Below are positions 4,744 through 46,540 of a stretch of DNA of 64,000 bases, piece by piece (position 1 is the first letter of the stretch; each line of letters opens with the position of its first letter). Source of the stretch: Phaeosaccion multiseriatum (taxonomy: Eukaryota; Protista; Ochrophyta, other classes). A program made the translations under genes and the position numbers. Where the stretch lies: the NCBI GenBank assembly GCA_965112735.1, contig OZ218962.1, positions 744,001-808,000 of the forward strand, written 5' to 3'. The notes under the pieces are model-generated. The model made no database searches and had not been told where the DNA came from. It was given only the letters and a program-made list of their open reading frames with translations.

Positions 4744-7700
4744 ATGAGCTCCTTCGTGAGAGATACAGCGTCACGCGAAGCAGCTTCGGACCTGGGGAGT
4801 GGTCTCTATCCGGAGCTGCAGCGAGGACTGCGAGGCTTGAACGACGAGCAAACAGAGGCCTGGCTGATCGAATGGCACCGCGCCCTGGTGGCGGCGAGGA
4901 AGGAGGGCCGCAGGAGCGAGGCGGACAAGCTCATCGCTACCATCGGAGTGGCGGCTTTGCAGGTGTATGCGGGTATGCGCAAAGCAGCTTTAATTCAACA
5001 GTCCTTCGCTTCCTGAGGCTTCATTTCTCCTTGCCTTCCTTCTGCCCTCCCTCAAGCAGATGCCCTCGATCACCTCTCCCCACCCTTCCCTGCTCCATAC
5101 ATCCCGCCCTCCTGCTCTCTATTCCCTCACTCCTCCACCACCTGCCTCCCTAGGTGCACAGCACGGGCCCATTGCGAGCCCTGCTGCCCTCCATCTACAA
5201 AGAGGTCCTTTCCGAGTTGCACAGCGGCGCCCTGCAGAGCACAGACATTGCCTGCATCAGGGCTCTAGGCCGCCTCCTCAGGGCCTTCCCCGGCAGCCCC
5301 ACTGCGCAAGTGTTGACGACAGCGCAGGCCGTCCTCGTCGACCGTATCACCACAAGGTGGGGTTTGAGCTTGGGACCGAAGGACCTCCTCCCCCCTGACC
5401 GTGGAGACCTTTCTTTTGTGCCTGCTTTCTATTATCTGCTCCACCTCCTATGATCATCATCCAGACTCACACAAAATGACTAGCAAAGCGCCGTTCCGCG
5501 AGTACCGTATCTTGCTGCTGCCTCTTACTCTGTTCTTCGGGACCCGCCTCTCCCCCTCTGGCCTTTCTTTTTCCTTGGCTTCCTCCACTCTCTGCCGCAA
5601 CCAGACCCATCTACTCTGAGACGGCCCAGAGCTACTCCATCTATCTGGAGGCTCTGGCGGCTTGTGAGTGGGGCAGCTTCGAGGCCTGCGCCCACGAGGT
5701 ACTTGGTGTCAACACGGTCTTGTGCGATGCCGCCTTGTGGGAAGCCAGGGAAGGCGGAGAGGGGCATGTCATGAGCTTGCTGGCGCTGCTGCTCATCCCG
5801 TACTGCAGTGAGCAACGCAGGCAGGCCTCAGGAGCTCCACCACCGCCAGATACAGCAGCAGCAGCAGCAGCAGCAGCAGGAGGAGGAGGAGGCGCGCCGA
5901 GGGAGCCCCCAGCAACCCTGACAGAGGACCCACTCCTGCTGCAGCAGCTCACGCAGGTCGCTGCCGGCCACCTGGCCCTGGTGCGGGAGTCCTTCGTGGC
6001 CAAGCCGGACCCTGCAGCCCTCAGTGCGGCCGCCGCGGTGCTCGGCGCATTGGCGGGGGCAAGCAGGCAAGAGGCGGTCGTGAGTCTAGCGGTGGAGGGT
6101 ATGCTCAGCATTATCGGCCAGGAGGAGGAGGAGGAGGAGGAGGAGGAGGACCAGGAGCAGCAGCAGCAGCAGGAGCAGCAGCAGGGGCAGGGAGTGCGCG
6201 GGGAGGGAGGGAGTAGCAGAGGAAGTGGGCAGCGCCTGTCTTGCCCCACGGCCTCTCCCTCGCCTTTCCATGTGACCGTGGGCAGTACGCAGGAGGCGGA
6301 GGCGCTAAAGTACGCGTTGGAGGCCTTGAAGGAGTGTTCCGAAGGCGTGGCGCCTCCCCTGCTCAGCTTTGATTCTGTAACCGTCACCATGGCTGCGCTC
6401 CAAGCGGTCCCCGAGGGGCTACGCGCCCTCCTGGCCCGCTGCTCCAGAGGAGAAAGCAGCAGCCCTGGCGAGCGAAAGGTCACAAGGGCGCTGTGCGGCG
6501 AGGTGCGGGAAGTAGCGGTGGGCTGTGCCCGCGCTGTGGTGGGGCTACACGGCTCTCTATGGCTACAGCACCATCCTGAGCGCCTGCTGAAGGGAGTGGT
6601 GCCAGGTCTGGCGTCTCCGCTGCTCTTGGCGGACGCTGTGGCTGCATTGAAGAGGGATGGAGGGGGCGGTGAAGCGAGGAGGGTGGTGGTGGAGGTGAGA
6701 GCCACGACCGGACGACAACTTGTGGCAGTCGGAGAAAGGGTGGGGGGCGTGTACACGTAAACCTGCCCCTCTCTCTCTTACTCTCACTCTCCGGCGTTGC
6801 TCTTCCACCCTCTCATGTGTCTCTCTCAAGTGTCGCGCCTGTAGCGCACATCTCTACCCCTTCTCCTCCCCCTTCCCCTCCCCCTCCTGCTCTCTTGTTT
6901 CCTCCTGGATGATGCTCCCTAACCCTCCGCTCCTCCTCCTTCTTCTCCTCCTCCCCTTCCTCCTCCCCCCCCCCCTCCTCCTCCTCCTCCTCCTCCTCCA
7001 CCACCACCACCACCACCACCACCTCCCAGATCGTTCTCCCCGACGCAATAGACCAGCTTGCCGGTGCCTTGCGCAACCTCAATCGATACAGCGCCGCCGC
7101 TGCCCAGGGTGTCCTAGAGGCGACTCACGCCCTCATTGAGGCGGCGGGAGACGACTTTGCTCCCCATGTGGACCGCATTGGCCGACCCTTATCCACCGCT
7201 CTGGCGGCGGCTGTATCACCAACTGCTGGTGCTGCTGCTGCTCCCGATGGAGGCCAGACGAGTGGGGTAGGGCTCTACTGTGGGAAGGTGGGGGCGGCTG
7301 AGCTGTTGTCTGCGGCGTGCGCGACGGTTGCGGCGGTCCAAGGCGAGCCAACCCGCCTGTCCACCAAGCCACCCGACCAGGAGCAGTTGGTAGTACAGCA
7401 GCAGCAGCAGCAGGGTCAGGGTGGAGCATATGCGCAACCTCGGCCGATGGCATTCGCGTGGTCAATGCCGCTGTTCGAGGCCGCCGTGGGCATCGTCGCC
7501 AGGCATTGGGGAGTACCAATCGGTCCAGATGGACTGCCAGGCATGCATGCGGGGGAGAGAGAGGGGGAGGGAGAGGAACTAGCAGTGGCGGCGTATGAGG
7601 GTCTGAGCACCATCGAAGCTCTCTTGAGGGGCAAGCTCATCGCAGGCAACGCAAAGGGCTTTGCTGAGACCAACGTGGAGACGCTCCTGGCGGGCCTGGC

Positions 7701-40340: not shown

Positions 40341-43300
40341 ATGTTGGGAGCCAGGAGGATCATAGCGTCTTCCTCGAGATGGCTGCTGGCGAGGCCAAGC
40401 GGCGCGGCGTATCTTAGCGGCAGTGGCGGCTTTTTCTCAGCCGACGAAAGCCCGAGCTTCACCACCAACAGCCGCACAAGCAGCAGAGTAAGGGCCTCCT
40501 ATTGCACGGGTAGCAGCGGGGGGAGCGTCAGGAACCAGAGGCGGTGTCCACCGATTATCAGTAGCAGGAACGACAGTGGTGCCAGCACGTGTCGAAGGGC
40601 CTTCTTCAGCAGCAAGGATGGCAGCGACGACGAGCACGAGGAGGAGGAGGAGGAGGAGGAGGAGGACGACGAAGGGTCGGGGGTTGTGGCGGGCTCGGAC
40701 TCAGACTCCAGTAGCGACGCCGCGGATAGGGAGTTCTTCCAGCAGCAAGCAGCGGCGGCGGCAGCGGCCGTGGGCAACAGCATCCCCTCGGCTTTCTTCG
40801 CACAGGTGTGATACGACCGTGTTGTTCGTTGGGAGAGGGCGGTGGGGCCTCTCATTCTCCCTCCTCTCTCTTCTCTCTCCTTATTCGTTGGAAGCGCTCT
40901 CCCTACCTCTTCTCTCTCCTTGTGCATTGGAAGAGGGGAGGGCTCTCTCTCTCTCTCCTCCCTCCGACCTACCCACCCGTCACACTCTCCCGCTCTCCTT
41001 CCCCCCTCCCCCTCCCACAACACAGGCAAGTGCCCACTATGACCTGGTCGTGGTTGGGTCGGGCCCTGCCGCCCAGAAGTGTGCCCTGGAGTCCGCTCGG
41101 ATGGGCAAGAAAGTTGCCGTGGTGGACAAGGGCTCCATGGTGGGGGGCGTGTGCGTGCACACAGGCACCATCCCCAGCAAGACGTTCAGAGAAGCTTGTC
41201 TACACCTTACGGGATTCCTGCACCAAGGTAAGGAATGGGTATTGGGCACGGATATTGGGTATTGGGTGTACATGACGACAGGGTGTGGGGACTTATCACA
41301 GTCGCAACACGGACCCAACCGAAACCCCTCCCCCCCAGCCACCAGCACCAACACCGACTCAACATCGGCACCCTCCCTCCCTCCCTCCATCCATCCATCC
41401 ATCCATCCATCCATCCATCCATCCATCCATCCATCCATCCATCAATCTCTTCTTTCCCTCCCTCCCTCCCTCCCTCACGCCCTCCCTCCCCTCCTCAAAC
41501 AACAAATACGCCAATCAACACCAAAGGCTTCTACGGCCGTATGAGTGCCATGAAGAAACACATCTCCATGCCTGATATCCTCATGGTGGTACGCAAGGTA
41601 GAGCACGGGGAGACGGCCGTCATCGACGATCAGCTCAGGAGGGAGGGGGTGGACCTCATCTCCGGTGAGGGTCAAGGGGAGGAGAGAGGAGAGGAGAGGG
41701 GAGGGGGGAGGAGAGGGGAGGAGGGTGGAGGTGAGAGGTAAGGGAGGGGTGAGGCAGGCAAAGAGCGAGATAGAGGGAGAACAGCATCAGACACAACCCA
41801 GCACCCCACCGACAAGTCATTCACGGCCCCTTCCCGCTCCCCATCTACCCACCCACCCACCCACCTACCCATCCACCCACCCATCCCAAACCCCCAAAAC
41901 TAGGCACTGCCCGCTTCATCCCCTCCCCCGAGGGCGATCATAAGCGAGTGGTTGTCCTGCGGGATACCAAAGAAGGCGACAAGGAGGAGCGCACCTCTGT
42001 GTACAGACACTTTACAGCTGGTGTACCTGCCATGACCCTGTCCAGTGAAAAGTTTTTGGTGGCGTGTGGCACGCGACCGGCCAGGCCGGATCACATCCCC
42101 TTTGACGGGCAGAGGGTATTCGACTCCGATCAGATTCTCTGGGGAGGAGTGAAGGAAGTGCCGAGGTGCGAAGAGAGGGAGAGAGGAAGGGGTTGTGTGT
42201 GTGCGCGCGTGTGTTTGTCTGTGTGGCTGTGTGTTTGTCTGAGAGAGAGGAGAAAGGCACACAGAGAGGGGAGGTGGGGAGTGTGTGTAAGAGAGAGACA
42301 CAGAGGGAGAGGGTGTGTATATGTGTGAGAGCGAGAGTTACCCTCCTCCCCCCCTCCCCCGCCCCAGAAGGCCTCGCATTGTCCACTTGTGGTTTGTCGT
42401 CCTTGTCGTCCTTGTCGTCCGCCGTCGCCACCCGTTGAATCGACATCTACACTATTTACAAACCCAAAGCTCGCCTGCATATTCACAGCTGGCACTACTC
42501 TCTCCTGATTCCAACGCCTTCTCTCCCTCCTTGCTGTGTGTGTGCGTGCGCCCTTTATCTCCCTCCTTGCTGTGTGTGTGCGTGCGCCCTTTATCTCCCT
42601 CCTTGCTGCTTTGCTTCCCTCGCCCCTCCCTGTACCCACACCCCCACCTGGGTGCACCCCTGCTTGGGGCGGTCTCTACTGTATACAGGGACCTGATCGT
42701 GGTTGGGGCCGGGGTCATCGGAATGGAGTATGCCTCCATGATCAACATCTTGCCTGGGACTACGGGTAAGGGGCGTCGCAAGGAAGACAGAAAGGAACGA
42801 AGGAAGGGAGGCTCACTCACTCACTCACTCACTCACTCACTCACTCACTCACATACTCACATACTCACATATTCACTGATTCACTCATTCACCTGCTCGC
42901 TAGCTCACTCAACTCACCCACCCACTCTCTGTATCTCTCTGCTCCTCTTTTGTGTGGGGAACAGTCACTATTATCGACCCCCGTGATGAAGTGCTCGGAT
43001 TCGCCGATAAGGTACGTACATACGTACTTGCGTACTTGCGTACGTCAAAAGTCAGCTTGGTGGGCTGTGCGTGGGCTGTGTGTGGGTGCGTGCGTGTGTG
43101 CCAGCTCTTCTCTACCATACCAAGGGATGGCAGTTGATGGGGAGGCCATAGGTGGGACGCCCACACTCACTCACACACACGCACACACTCACTCACTCAC
43201 TCTCACGCACACACACGCACACACTCACTCACATACACGCACACACTCGCTCACACACACACACTCACACACGCACACTTTCATTGACATACACAGGAAG

Positions 43301-45711
43301 TTGTGCAGGCCTTGGCCTATGCAATGCGCAAGAGCGGGGCTCGCTTCCTGCTGGGGGAGACAGTGCAGTCGGTTGAGAGGCAGAGCGGCACCAACAAGGT
43401 CGTTGCGGTGCTGAGCACGGGCAAGAGGGTCGTGGGGGATGCACTACTCTACACCATGGGCCGGCAAGGTAGGGGAGGGGAGGGTATGGGGTAGAAGGGA
43501 GAGGGAGAGGTGGCCTTGAGCCTTGAGGAGGGACTCTTCCTTTCTCTTTCCTTCTCTCTCTCTCCCGCTGCTACTGCTACTGCTGTTGGTGATGCTCGTG
43601 CATTCCCCCACACGTATAAGTTCTGCTTTGGTGGTAGTCTGTCTCTGAACTGAACTCCTCTGCTCTCCTCTGATCTCCTCTCTCCTCCACTCCACTCCCC
43701 TCCACTCCCCTCCCCTCCCCTCCCCTCCCCTCCCCTCCCCTCCCCTCCCCTCCCCTCCCCTCCCCTCCCCTCCCCTCCCCTCCCCTCCCCTCCCCTCCCC
43801 TCCCATCCCCTCCCTCCCCTCCCCTCCCCTCCCCTCCCCTCCCCTCCCCTCCCCTCCCCTCCCCTCCCCTCCCTCTTCTTCCCTCCTCTCCTCTTCTTCC
43901 CTCCTCTCCTCTCCTCTCCTCTCCTCTCCCTCAGGCAACTCGGACAGCGTCGGGCTGGAGAGTGTGGGGATTGAAGTAGACAAGAGGGGCCTCATTCAGG
44001 TCAGTCAGTAAGTCAACTGGGCTCTTCTCTCCTCTCGATGGCAGCTCATGGCGGCACTGAGCGTTACACTCACTGTACCGCGCTGTGCATCTCTCCTTGC
44101 CTTGCCTGGTCCTGATCATGTCCTCCCCCTGCCCTGCCACGCTCAGGTCAACGACTACTACCAGGCAGCGGAAGATGTCTACGGTGAGAGGAATCTATAC
44201 CGCACCAAGACGGACCCGTCAATAGTCTGTCCGTGTACATATCTCTCTCTCTCTATCCGTCTCTCTCTCTGTCTATCTGTTTCTCCCAAACCCGTCCTCA
44301 TTCTTGTCTTAACCCCCCAACCCCCCCCCCACACCCTCCCACCCTCTATACTCCCCCACAACTAACCTTTCCTCCCTCCTCCCTCCCTCCCTCCCTCCCT
44401 CCCTTCCGTGCGTTGGCGGCTCTCGCTGCCACCGCCCCTGCCCTGATACCATCTGCTGCCATCCTTCTCTCCCCAGCGGTGAGTGCCTGAAGCATACCAT
44501 ACTCCATTGATTTCTCACGCTTTTTCGCATGCACTTCCTCGTAAAGCCGCCGACTACACTCCCCTCTGCACGAATTGTCCCTCCCTCCCTCCCTCCCTCC
44601 CTCCTCACTCCCTCCCTCCCTCCCTTCCTCCCTCCCTCTCTCCCTCCCTCCCTCCCTCCCTCCCTCCCTCCCTCCCTCCCTCCCTCCCTCCCTCCATCCC
44701 TCACTCACTCACTCACTCACTCCCTTTCTCACCCCCTTCCTTCCCTCAGTGCGGCGACATCATCGGCTACCCTGCCCTTGCATCCACCTCTACAGAGCAA
44801 GGTCGCCGTGCCGCTCTCCACATGTGGCGAGGGGCCTCTGCCGTTACACTGGACGACGACATGCTGGATTACAGCAGCCGCAGCGGCTCCGACCAAGGGG
44901 GAGGGCAGGACGGGGGCATGGTGGCAGTGGGTGGCGGGGAGGACCAGGAGCGCCACACGCAGGTCAAGACAGTCGATCACGAAACATGGTTGGGCAGAGA
45001 CTCCGAGCAGCTCTTCCCATACGGTATTTACACGGTGCCAGAGATTAGCATGGTTGGCAAGACAGAGGCTCAACTTACGGCGGAGGGAGTCAATTACGAG
45101 GTCGGGGTCGCCAACTTCGAGGAGCTGGCCAAGGGACAGGTATGGGTGTTGGTGATACAGGGGTGGGTGGGTGGGTGGGAACGTAAAAGTGGGTGGGTGG
45201 ATGGGCGGGTGGGTCTGTAGAGGCGTGTGTGTGAACGGAAGGTTATCGGCGGAGGAAGGGGTCCACTTCTGCGCTGCTGTCTCGCCCACGTCCCCAGGGT
45301 CTCTTTTCTCTTGTGCGAGACTTGTCCATCCACTGCCATCCGTCCACTGCCATCCGTCCACTCCCATCCGTCCACTGCCATCCGCCCACTGCCATCCGCG
45401 CCTCGCTTGGATCGATTGGCCGCTCTCCACTTGCCTTGTCTTGCCTTGCCTGGCCCTACTCGTGCGCTCCTCACCTCCCTCTCTCTCCTCCCTCCTCCCC
45501 CCCTTTCCCCTCCCTTCCTTGCCTCCCCTCCCTCCCCCGCGCGGTGGCCTGTTACAAATGGCGTACCGTATCAGATGCTTGGAGGGGCGGATGGCTTCCT
45601 CAAGATCATCTTCCATGCCGAAACGCTTAAGCTCTTGGGCGTACACTGCTTCGGTGACGGGGCCACAGAGATCATACACATCGGACAGGTGCGTGTGTGT
45701 GTGTGTGTGTG

Positions 45712-45766
<55 letters not shown>

Positions 45767-46323
45767 GTGTGTGCGTGTGTGTGTCGGTGTGTCGGTGTGT
45801 GTATGTATGTGTGTGAGAATGTGTGTCGCGCTCTCATTCTTCTCTCTCGCCCTCTCTCTCGTCTCGCTCTATGGTCTCCCTCTCGCTTGACTCTCTCCCG
45901 CTTTTCTCTTCTCTTCTGTCTCTCTTGACTCCATCTCTCCCTCTCTCTATCTTCCTCTCTTTCTCTCTCTCTCTTTCTCTTTCTCTCTCTCTCTCTCTCT
46001 CACATACAGGTCCTCATGAGTCAGGGCGGTACGATCAAATACTTTGAGTCAAGTGTTTTCAACTACCCCACCCGCGCCGGTAAGTCCATAATCCCTTCCC
46101 ATATTCTGTCTGTCTGTCTGTCTGTCTGTCGCCCAGTTTGCTCTCTCCATTCCCCGCTCCGTACCCCACTCTCTGACTCGCTGTTCTCCTCCCCCTCCCC
46201 CTCCTCCTCCTCCTCCTCCTCCTCCTCCTCCTCCTCCTCCTCCTCCTCCTCCTCCTCCTCCTCCTCCTCCTCCTCCTCCTCCTCCCCCTCCTCCTCCTCC
46301 TCCTCCTCCTCCTCCTCCTCCTC

Positions 46324-46354
<31 letters not shown>

Positions 46355-46540
46355 TCCTCCTCCTCCCCCTCCTCCTCCTCCTCCCCCTCCTCCTCCTCCC
46401 CCTCCTCCTCGTCCTCCTCCCTCTGCCGTGGACGCATGTCTCCCCCCCCTCCCCCCCGGGTCCTCACAGAGGCGTACAACGTCGCTGCCCATGACGGCCT
46501 TCGAAAAGTCGGCAGGGCAGGTGTGGACATAGTGCCTTAA
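40341..46540 (+). CDS. sthA: Soluble pyridine nucleotide transhydrogenase (SthA/UdhA-type flavoprotein) with N-terminal extension, 14 exons
   Basis: GSGPAA FAD motif; [13 protein letters not shown] (CxxxxT rather than the CxxxxC of DLD/GR); [11 protein letters not shown]; [11 protein letters not shown]; [12 protein letters not shown]; EIIHIGQ; FNYPTRAEAY (YPT rather than HPT). Exons 40341-40805, 41026-41227, 41527-41664, 41904-42165, 42689-42765, 42965-43011, 43297-43468, 43935-43999, 44147-44183, 44477-44478, 44750-45139, 45575-45688, 46010-46079, 46470-46540. Confidence 0.93.
44477..44478 (+). other. Predicted 2-nt microexon (CG) of sthA
   Basis: ccttctctccccAG|CG|GTGAGT joins a phase-1 donor (44183) to a phase-0 acceptor (44750) and restores VYACGD. 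Confidence 0.8.

Follow-up and report, generated by a model that had tools for sequence, protein, structure and literature searches.

A putative two-nucleotide internal exon in a soluble transhydrogenase gene of the alga Phaeosaccion multiseriatum

The dinucleotide CG at positions 44477–44478 of a 64,000-nucleotide (nt) stretch of Phaeosaccion multiseriatum DNA (assembly GCA_965112735.1, contig OZ218962.1, positions 744,001 to 808,000, forward strand; this whole stretch is called the window, and positions below are those of the window) is read here as an internal coding exon of two bases, and a probability of roughly 0.8 is assigned to this predicted exon being real. It would belong to a SthA-like soluble transhydrogenase gene (coding region 40341–46540, forward strand) and would complete the alanine codon (G + CG = GCG) of VYACGD, a form of the (V/I)(Y/F)AxGD motif that binds flavin adenine dinucleotide (FAD). 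Two complete U2-type GT–AG introns abut the dinucleotide, namely intron A (44184–44476, forward strand, 293 nt) and intron B (44479–44749, forward strand, 271 nt), and a separate donor, candidate branch site, pyrimidine tract, and AG are present in each of them. With CG included, the 14 exons of the gene formed a single open frame of 703 codons, and all 13 introns were of GT–AG type; with CG left out and exon 9 joined to exon 11, the frame shifted and met a stop about 99 codons later, inside exon 11. The FAD-binding motif was present only when CG was included.

Reading frame and splice signals at the CG site

Exon 9 (44147–44183, forward strand, 37 nt) reads cag/GTC AAC ... GTC TAC G/gtgaga (slashes mark splice junctions), so that it ends in phase 1 with the first base (G) of the alanine codon and with the donor G/GTGAGA, and exon 11 (44750–45139, forward strand, 390 nt) starts ccctcag/TGC GGC GAC in phase 0. 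An earlier note on this DNA had claimed these two phases, a frameshift on direct joining of the two exons, the lack of another nearby AG, and the string ccccAG CG GTGAGT at 44471–44484 as the source of exactly two bases. Phases, string, and coordinates proved exact on direct reading, with CG lying within the 566-nt gap between the two exons; the frameshift was reproduced by the frame count, and no alternative AG was found closer to the exon 11 acceptor (44748–44749) than about 200 nt upstream (44545–44546).

The site has the layout tgccatccttctctccccAG/CG/GTGAGT, that is, an acceptor, then two bases, and then a full GTRAGT donor. Intron A, starting with the donor GTGAGA, had a candidate branch sequence CTGAT 30 nt from its 3′ end (A at 44446) and an acceptor made of 17 pyrimidines in 20 positions (44454–44473) plus CAG. 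Intron B started with GTGAGT, which was among just two full GTRAGT consensus donors of the gene's 13, and it carried a (CCCT)n tract (about 44580–44700), CTCAC branch candidates, and an acceptor with 19 pyrimidines in 20 positions plus CAG.

Internal pieces of the gap that would keep the frame and contain no stop (AG...GT/GC, length 2+3k) numbered 15, and they were scored with matrices trained on splice sites elsewhere in the same gene: CG scored 7.5, and the runner-up scored −6.7. The other 2+3k candidates were rejected since they had no usable donor. Single-intron alternatives were also enumerated with GT, GC, AT, or GA donors and AG or AC acceptors, and none joined credible sites to an intact motif. 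The need for a two-nucleotide exon, as asserted in the earlier note, is supported by sequence and comparison: within the gap, CG alone, with its strong acceptor and full-consensus donor, is a credible means of restoring the frame.

The pattern AGCNGTRAGT had a single occurrence on both strands of the window (128 kb), and this was the CG site; the expectation from shuffles was about 1 per 128 kb, giving about 0.004 for the gap on the right strand. A strict pattern (eight pyrimidines, N, CAG, NN, and GTRAGT), which was set up after the site was known, was found 21 times on both strands of the 67-Mb genome versus 10 times for its reversed control, and this rate corresponded to about 1e-4 expected occurrences in the gap. 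Across the gene's remaining 3.5 kb of intron, AG-NN-GT was present at seven sites, all surrounded mostly by purines (pyrimidines at no more than 7 of 20 positions), and at none of them did the two bases begin with C.

The genome-wide matches were inspected as well. Eight of the 21 strict-pattern occurrences were one repeated 20-mer, CCCTTCTTGCAGTGGTAAGT (acceptor-like tract, TG, and donor), which was identical at eight genome places (e.g., C1:652102-652121, C3:4944291-4944310, and C10:31496-31515) and probably belongs to a repeat dispersed in the genome or to a gene present in many copies. No further two-nucleotide exon was recognisable among the 12 strict-motif genome matches inspected, amid the long spurious open reading frames of this GC-rich genome. 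One match (L035, G000:C14:591104-594123, about 1490–1520) was an ordinary exon end, ...GGSLLYR/GTGAGT, in a gene with the CDP-alcohol phosphatidyltransferase-like motifs DGYIAR and DPLADK; the strict motif alone is therefore no marker of a microexon.

The FAD motif in homologues and alternative joins

Joining TAC-G, CG, and TGC gives Tyr-Ala-Cys, and the resulting VYACGD is the reading expected from the closest relatives. The residue two before GD was Ala in 352 of the 357 motif-bearing homologues, and the nearest clade (Scytosiphon, Ectocarpus, Undaria, Chrysoparadoxa, and several contigs) reads YACGD; the match to the conserved YAxGD FAD-binding motif put forward from the window alone is supported. 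In the solved SthA 9n4y, the aligned residues are IYAAGDVIGWPSLAS, with the motif IYAAGD, and the same VYA(C/V)GD occurs in thioredoxin reductase and 2-ketopropyl-CoM reductase. Homology searches were run exon by exon, and exons were joined for the in-script frame count and for local scoring of a 13-residue peptide; exon 9 plus Ala scored against the homologous segments of relatives with a z of 6.9, and 0 of 300 shuffles scored as high. A short profile hidden Markov model of the 21 residues before xGD was too weak for any discrimination.

Two other ways of crossing the gap were weighed. The first is a single intron of 564 nt whose donor would be the non-canonical GA (44186 GAGAGG ... CAG 44749), by which exon 9 would end TAC GGT, the protein would read VYGCGD, and no microexon would exist. 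Such an intron keeps the frame and uses the same acceptor, and Gly at the position concerned is on record in 2 of the 357 homologues; nevertheless, Ala is the rule there and the closest clade has YACGD, the GA donor would be the sole non-GT donor of the gene, a good canonical G/GTGAGA located 2 nt upstream would compete with it, and the complete acceptor–CG–GTGAGT module in the gap would be left unexplained. The GA-donor intron is thus considered very improbable. Complementary DNA across the junction would be expected to read TACGCGTGC with the microexon versus TACGGTTGC with the GA-donor intron.

The second is a different canonical path, for which two versions were considered: (i) a donor GAT/GTCTAC (44177) spliced to 44750, dropping Val-Tyr-Ala, and (ii) read-through of exon 9 to a donor at 44229 followed by CG, adding 15 residues and replacing Ala by Ser. 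Both keep the frame, and the read-through peptide superficially resembles the family motif Y-R/Q-T-x-x-P-x-I/V, but the donors GTCTAC and GTCCGT are poor beside GTGAGA at 44184, and use of the 44177 donor would cost the protein the conserved beta-strand that precedes GD. The peptide gained by read-through (~50 nt at the start of intron A, 44184–44235) scored no better than shuffles, with a z of 0.5 versus 6.9 for exon 9 plus Ala. Very little credence is accordingly given to either version.

Several points weigh against the assignment of CG as an exon. Compared with all close relatives, exon 9 is short by one residue and is missing the Thr that is usual in Y-Q/R-T-x-x-P-x-(I/V)-Y-A (relatives, VNEYYQTAVEHIYA), so the segment before the FAD motif is somewhat atypical. 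The intron A acceptor scored low (−0.6) by an acceptor matrix that was overfitted (12 training sites over 22 positions); support for the acceptor at CG comes from its pyrimidine count and not from the matrix score. The microexon is not conserved, since no relative has these introns, and this leaves no comparative proof of splice-site selection. Finally, no transcript or protein of the species was found when exon 11 was searched against 1.8 billion representatives plus a 90%-cluster collection and in a metagenome scan, nor did the full-length relatives P0003 and P0211 as queries yield a same-species protein; those searches returned distant relatives only, with at most 58% identity across the whole of exon 11.

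Some of the same observations could also be taken to mean that the frame break is an artefact, with two bases missing from the assembly at an exon boundary, or that the gene is a recent pseudogene, the AG–CG–GTGAGT string being coincidental in either case. The genomic sequence comes from a single assembly, and the loss of one residue and of the conserved Thr from exon 9 is a possible hint of relaxed constraint. Against this stand the intact state of the other exons, the 703-codon open frame with its 13 clean GT–AG introns, and the single-copy status of the gene in a 67-Mb assembly of 22 contigs. Moreover, a motif with a chance of about 0.004 or less of arising in the gap supplies the exact missing conserved residue. 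An artefact or a pseudogene is hence regarded as quite unlikely.

Origin of the two introns and proposed splicing

The motif (I/V)YA(C/A)GD was found on uninterrupted DNA in Scytosiphon (L003, 9096–9188) and Chrysoparadoxa (L015, exon 4969–5073), on a JGI contig (L002), on the NCBI contigs L016 and L018, and on the contigs L022 and L023. Because relatives encode the motif without interruption, the two bases represent ancestral exon sequence. Introns A and B had no counterpart at the exact position in any relative examined. In a tree of the exon 11 region, the window grouped with brown algae, Chrysoparadoxa, and metagenome relatives in a clade of good support (98/98), inside which there was no resolution; the choice between intron gain and intron loss is therefore made by parsimony only. 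By parsimony, introns A and B most likely arose in the lineage of the window, and either two independent gains 2 bp apart or one gain beside an older intron would be the parsimonious origin.

An intron close to this position was observed in one metagenome relative (L001, ENA scaffold, 780–1015), in which a single intron lies in the Cys codon of YACGD (gca t/gtaagc ... gcag/gt ggg gac), 1 nt downstream of the position of intron B; it is either intron B after sliding by a single base or an intron gained independently at almost the identical site. Further upstream, the phase-0 intron just before VND(F/Y)YQ (44000–44146 in the window) is at the same place in Scytosiphon L003 (6136–9095) and in L002 (just upstream of 6001), and Chrysoparadoxa is without it.

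Two particular sources of the introns were considered, and there was no sign of either. An introner or transposon origin was rejected on finding that the 566-nt gap matched only microsatellites ((CCCT)n and CT-rich parts) genome-wide; as to a duplication, introns A and B were unrelated in their unique 5′ portions and had (CCCT)n alone in common. A second gene copy or a haplotig was sought in the genome to test conservation of the CG module, and none was found.

In the proposed mechanism, removal of introns A and B would join TAC-G, CG, and TGC and would restore the (V/I)YA(C/A)GD strand-loop that holds FAD. U1 pairs with positions −3 to +6 of a donor, and the acceptor of intron A and the donor of intron B are two bases apart; the two sites would for this reason not be occupied simultaneously. 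Both introns, each shorter than 300 nt, would instead be recognised by intron definition and excised one after the other. Either order of removal would be chemically possible because the intron B donor has G at −3 both before and after excision of intron A, and co-transcriptional excision of intron A first is the simplest guess. In this the process would resemble recursive splicing, with the difference that two bases are retained.

Skipping of CG would yield a frameshifted messenger RNA (mRNA), and no sign of regulatory use was recognised. The enzyme gene has a single copy, and skipping would ruin its frame; for this reason the predicted exon is most likely constitutive. It might, as another possibility, be real but facultative, with skipping producing a frameshifted, decay-prone mRNA and thereby acting as a splicing switch on the enzyme level. 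Such a switch could draw on the premature stop about 99 codons on, in exon 11, and on the ease with which tiny exons are skipped, and some plant 1-nt exons do have alternative isoforms (PMC8831610). However, the sequence offers no regulatory hint, and the splice signals at CG are among the strongest of the gene, as is the case for ultrashort exons in constitutive use (PMC8831610, PMC4674806); facultative use is considered unlikely.

Animals are known to have 3-nt exons, and the predicted CG exon adds to a rare, already known class of ultrashort exons. The 1-nt exon of Arabidopsis APC11 was proven by complementary DNA and mutated minigenes, is conserved across land plants, and was proposed to be spliced by a sequential, intron-defined route (Guo & Liu 2015, PMC4674806). 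The algal site shares with APC11 an ultrashort coding exon, constitutive in APC11 and probably so here, that lies within an apparent single intron, is flanked by AG and GT, is required to keep the frame, and belongs to ordinary exon in those homologues that lack the introns; it differs in being 2 nt rather than 1 nt long, in belonging to a stramenopile rather than a plant, in being lineage-specific rather than conserved, and in being predicted from sequence. Intron definition or ordered splicing, as suggested in the earlier note, is a reasonable reading of the algal site and agrees with the route proposed for APC11.

Plant microexons of 1–15 nt (e.g., the experimentally proven 1-nt exon of VPS55) are placed by read mappers only when the junction is annotated (Yu et al. 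2022, PMC8831610), and they resemble the CG exon in being missed by annotation, in encoding a conserved motif, and in having a strong GTRAGT donor adjoining the tiny exon. Unlike the lineage-specific CG exon, the plant microexon clusters have been conserved for hundreds of millions of years, and the parts of that source consulted describe 1-nt and larger exons without singling out 2-nt ones (PMC8831610). The 1-nt exon reported in Fusarium CYP621A (PMC12940212) is likewise an ultrashort exon that was found by homology and is needed to assemble a conserved enzyme gene; unlike the algal exon, it is fungal and 1 nt long.

Recursive splice sites, or zero-nucleotide exons, occur in long introns of Drosophila and vertebrates (as cited in PMC4674806, a secondary source for this point). 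They share with the CG site a pyrimidine tract–AG beside a GTRAGT donor and the stepwise removal of two halves, but they keep no base and lie in very long introns, whereas two coding bases would be retained here and the gap is just 566 nt. Recursive sites are defined by direct juxtaposition AG/GT, and at the CG site two frame-required bases were found in between; it might function in a similar way, but it does not belong to this class. Neither a paper naming a 2-nt exon nor one on microexons in brown algae or stramenopiles was found in a literature search of incomplete coverage.

An exon of 2 nt will escape standard gene predictors and read mappers, and this enzyme would be annotated as frameshifted, truncated, or devoid of its FAD motif; the same annotation problem applies to other genes of intron-dense stramenopile genomes. 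If the CG exon is confirmed, ordered, intron-defined splicing would be shown outside plants and fungi, and the gene would offer a clean example of a microexon made by lineage-specific introns and not inherited as such, its bases being plain exon in all sampled relatives. A wider scenario is entertained only tentatively and is thought doubtful: after the split from brown algae and Chrysoparadoxa, two introns would have been gained 2 bp apart in one codon of the FAD motif, and the spliceosome of this alga would routinely handle exons too short for exon definition. Were this true, the species would serve as a natural model of splicing that is obligatorily sequential and recursive-like, and also of how dense intron gain creates ultrashort exons.

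The transhydrogenase gene and its host

The window lies on contig 13 of the 22-contig, 67-Mb genome, and a genome search found the transhydrogenase gene there as a single copy. As judged from the exon 11 region tree and protein searches, the proteins closest to the window came from brown algae, from Chrysoparadoxa, and from further ochrophyte stramenopiles.

The transhydrogenase identity given to the gene product in the earlier note was supported by profile searches with single exons: NF003585 (Si-specific soluble NAD(P)+ transhydrogenase, NCBIfam) was the best profile match for all five exons tested, which matched it colinearly at profile positions 4–66, 134–170, 218–272, 324–386 (best stretch of exon 11), and 388–424 in exon order. 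The summed score was about 298 bits over five exons searched singly, to be read beside a family cut-off of 465 bits that applies to whole proteins. The best solved relative of the gene product was the soluble transhydrogenase (SthA) 9n4y. Two dinucleotide-binding GxGxxG/A folds are encoded, one in exon 2 and one in exon 5, and the Pfam dimerisation domain PF02852 is present in relatives' products over the region spanning exons 11–13. SthA is set apart from lipoamide dehydrogenase by the missing redox-active CxxxxC pair (second Cys replaced, GTIPSK), and exon 2 indeed encodes a single Cys, the second Cys of that pair being replaced by Thr. From these sequence features, the gene is assigned to the soluble, Si-specific NAD(P)+ transhydrogenases (SthA/UdhA).

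Exon 8 (43935–43999, forward strand, 65 nt) precedes exon 9 in the exon table, and its limits came from direct reading and the frame count. Exon 11 ends ...ELAKGQ and carries a lineage-variable insert: compared to bacterial SthA 9n4y, about 55–60 residues rich in Gly, Asp, and Ser are added (44828–45001) between the GD region and the FPYGIYT block, and the inserts found at this site in relatives differ in length and sequence, that of Ectocarpus being much longer. Exon 1 (40341–40805) encodes an N-terminal extension of about 155 residues without counterpart in bacterial SthA, which begins with a basic, Ser-rich part and includes a long acidic stretch; a targeting peptide followed by a linker of low complexity may make up this extension. 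Long microsatellites fill several introns of the gene, at 41360–41470, 43660–43930, 44580–44700, 45690–45800, and 46180–46420, and the repeats concerned are (CCAT)n, (CTCCC)n, (CCCT)n, (GT)n, and (CCT)n.

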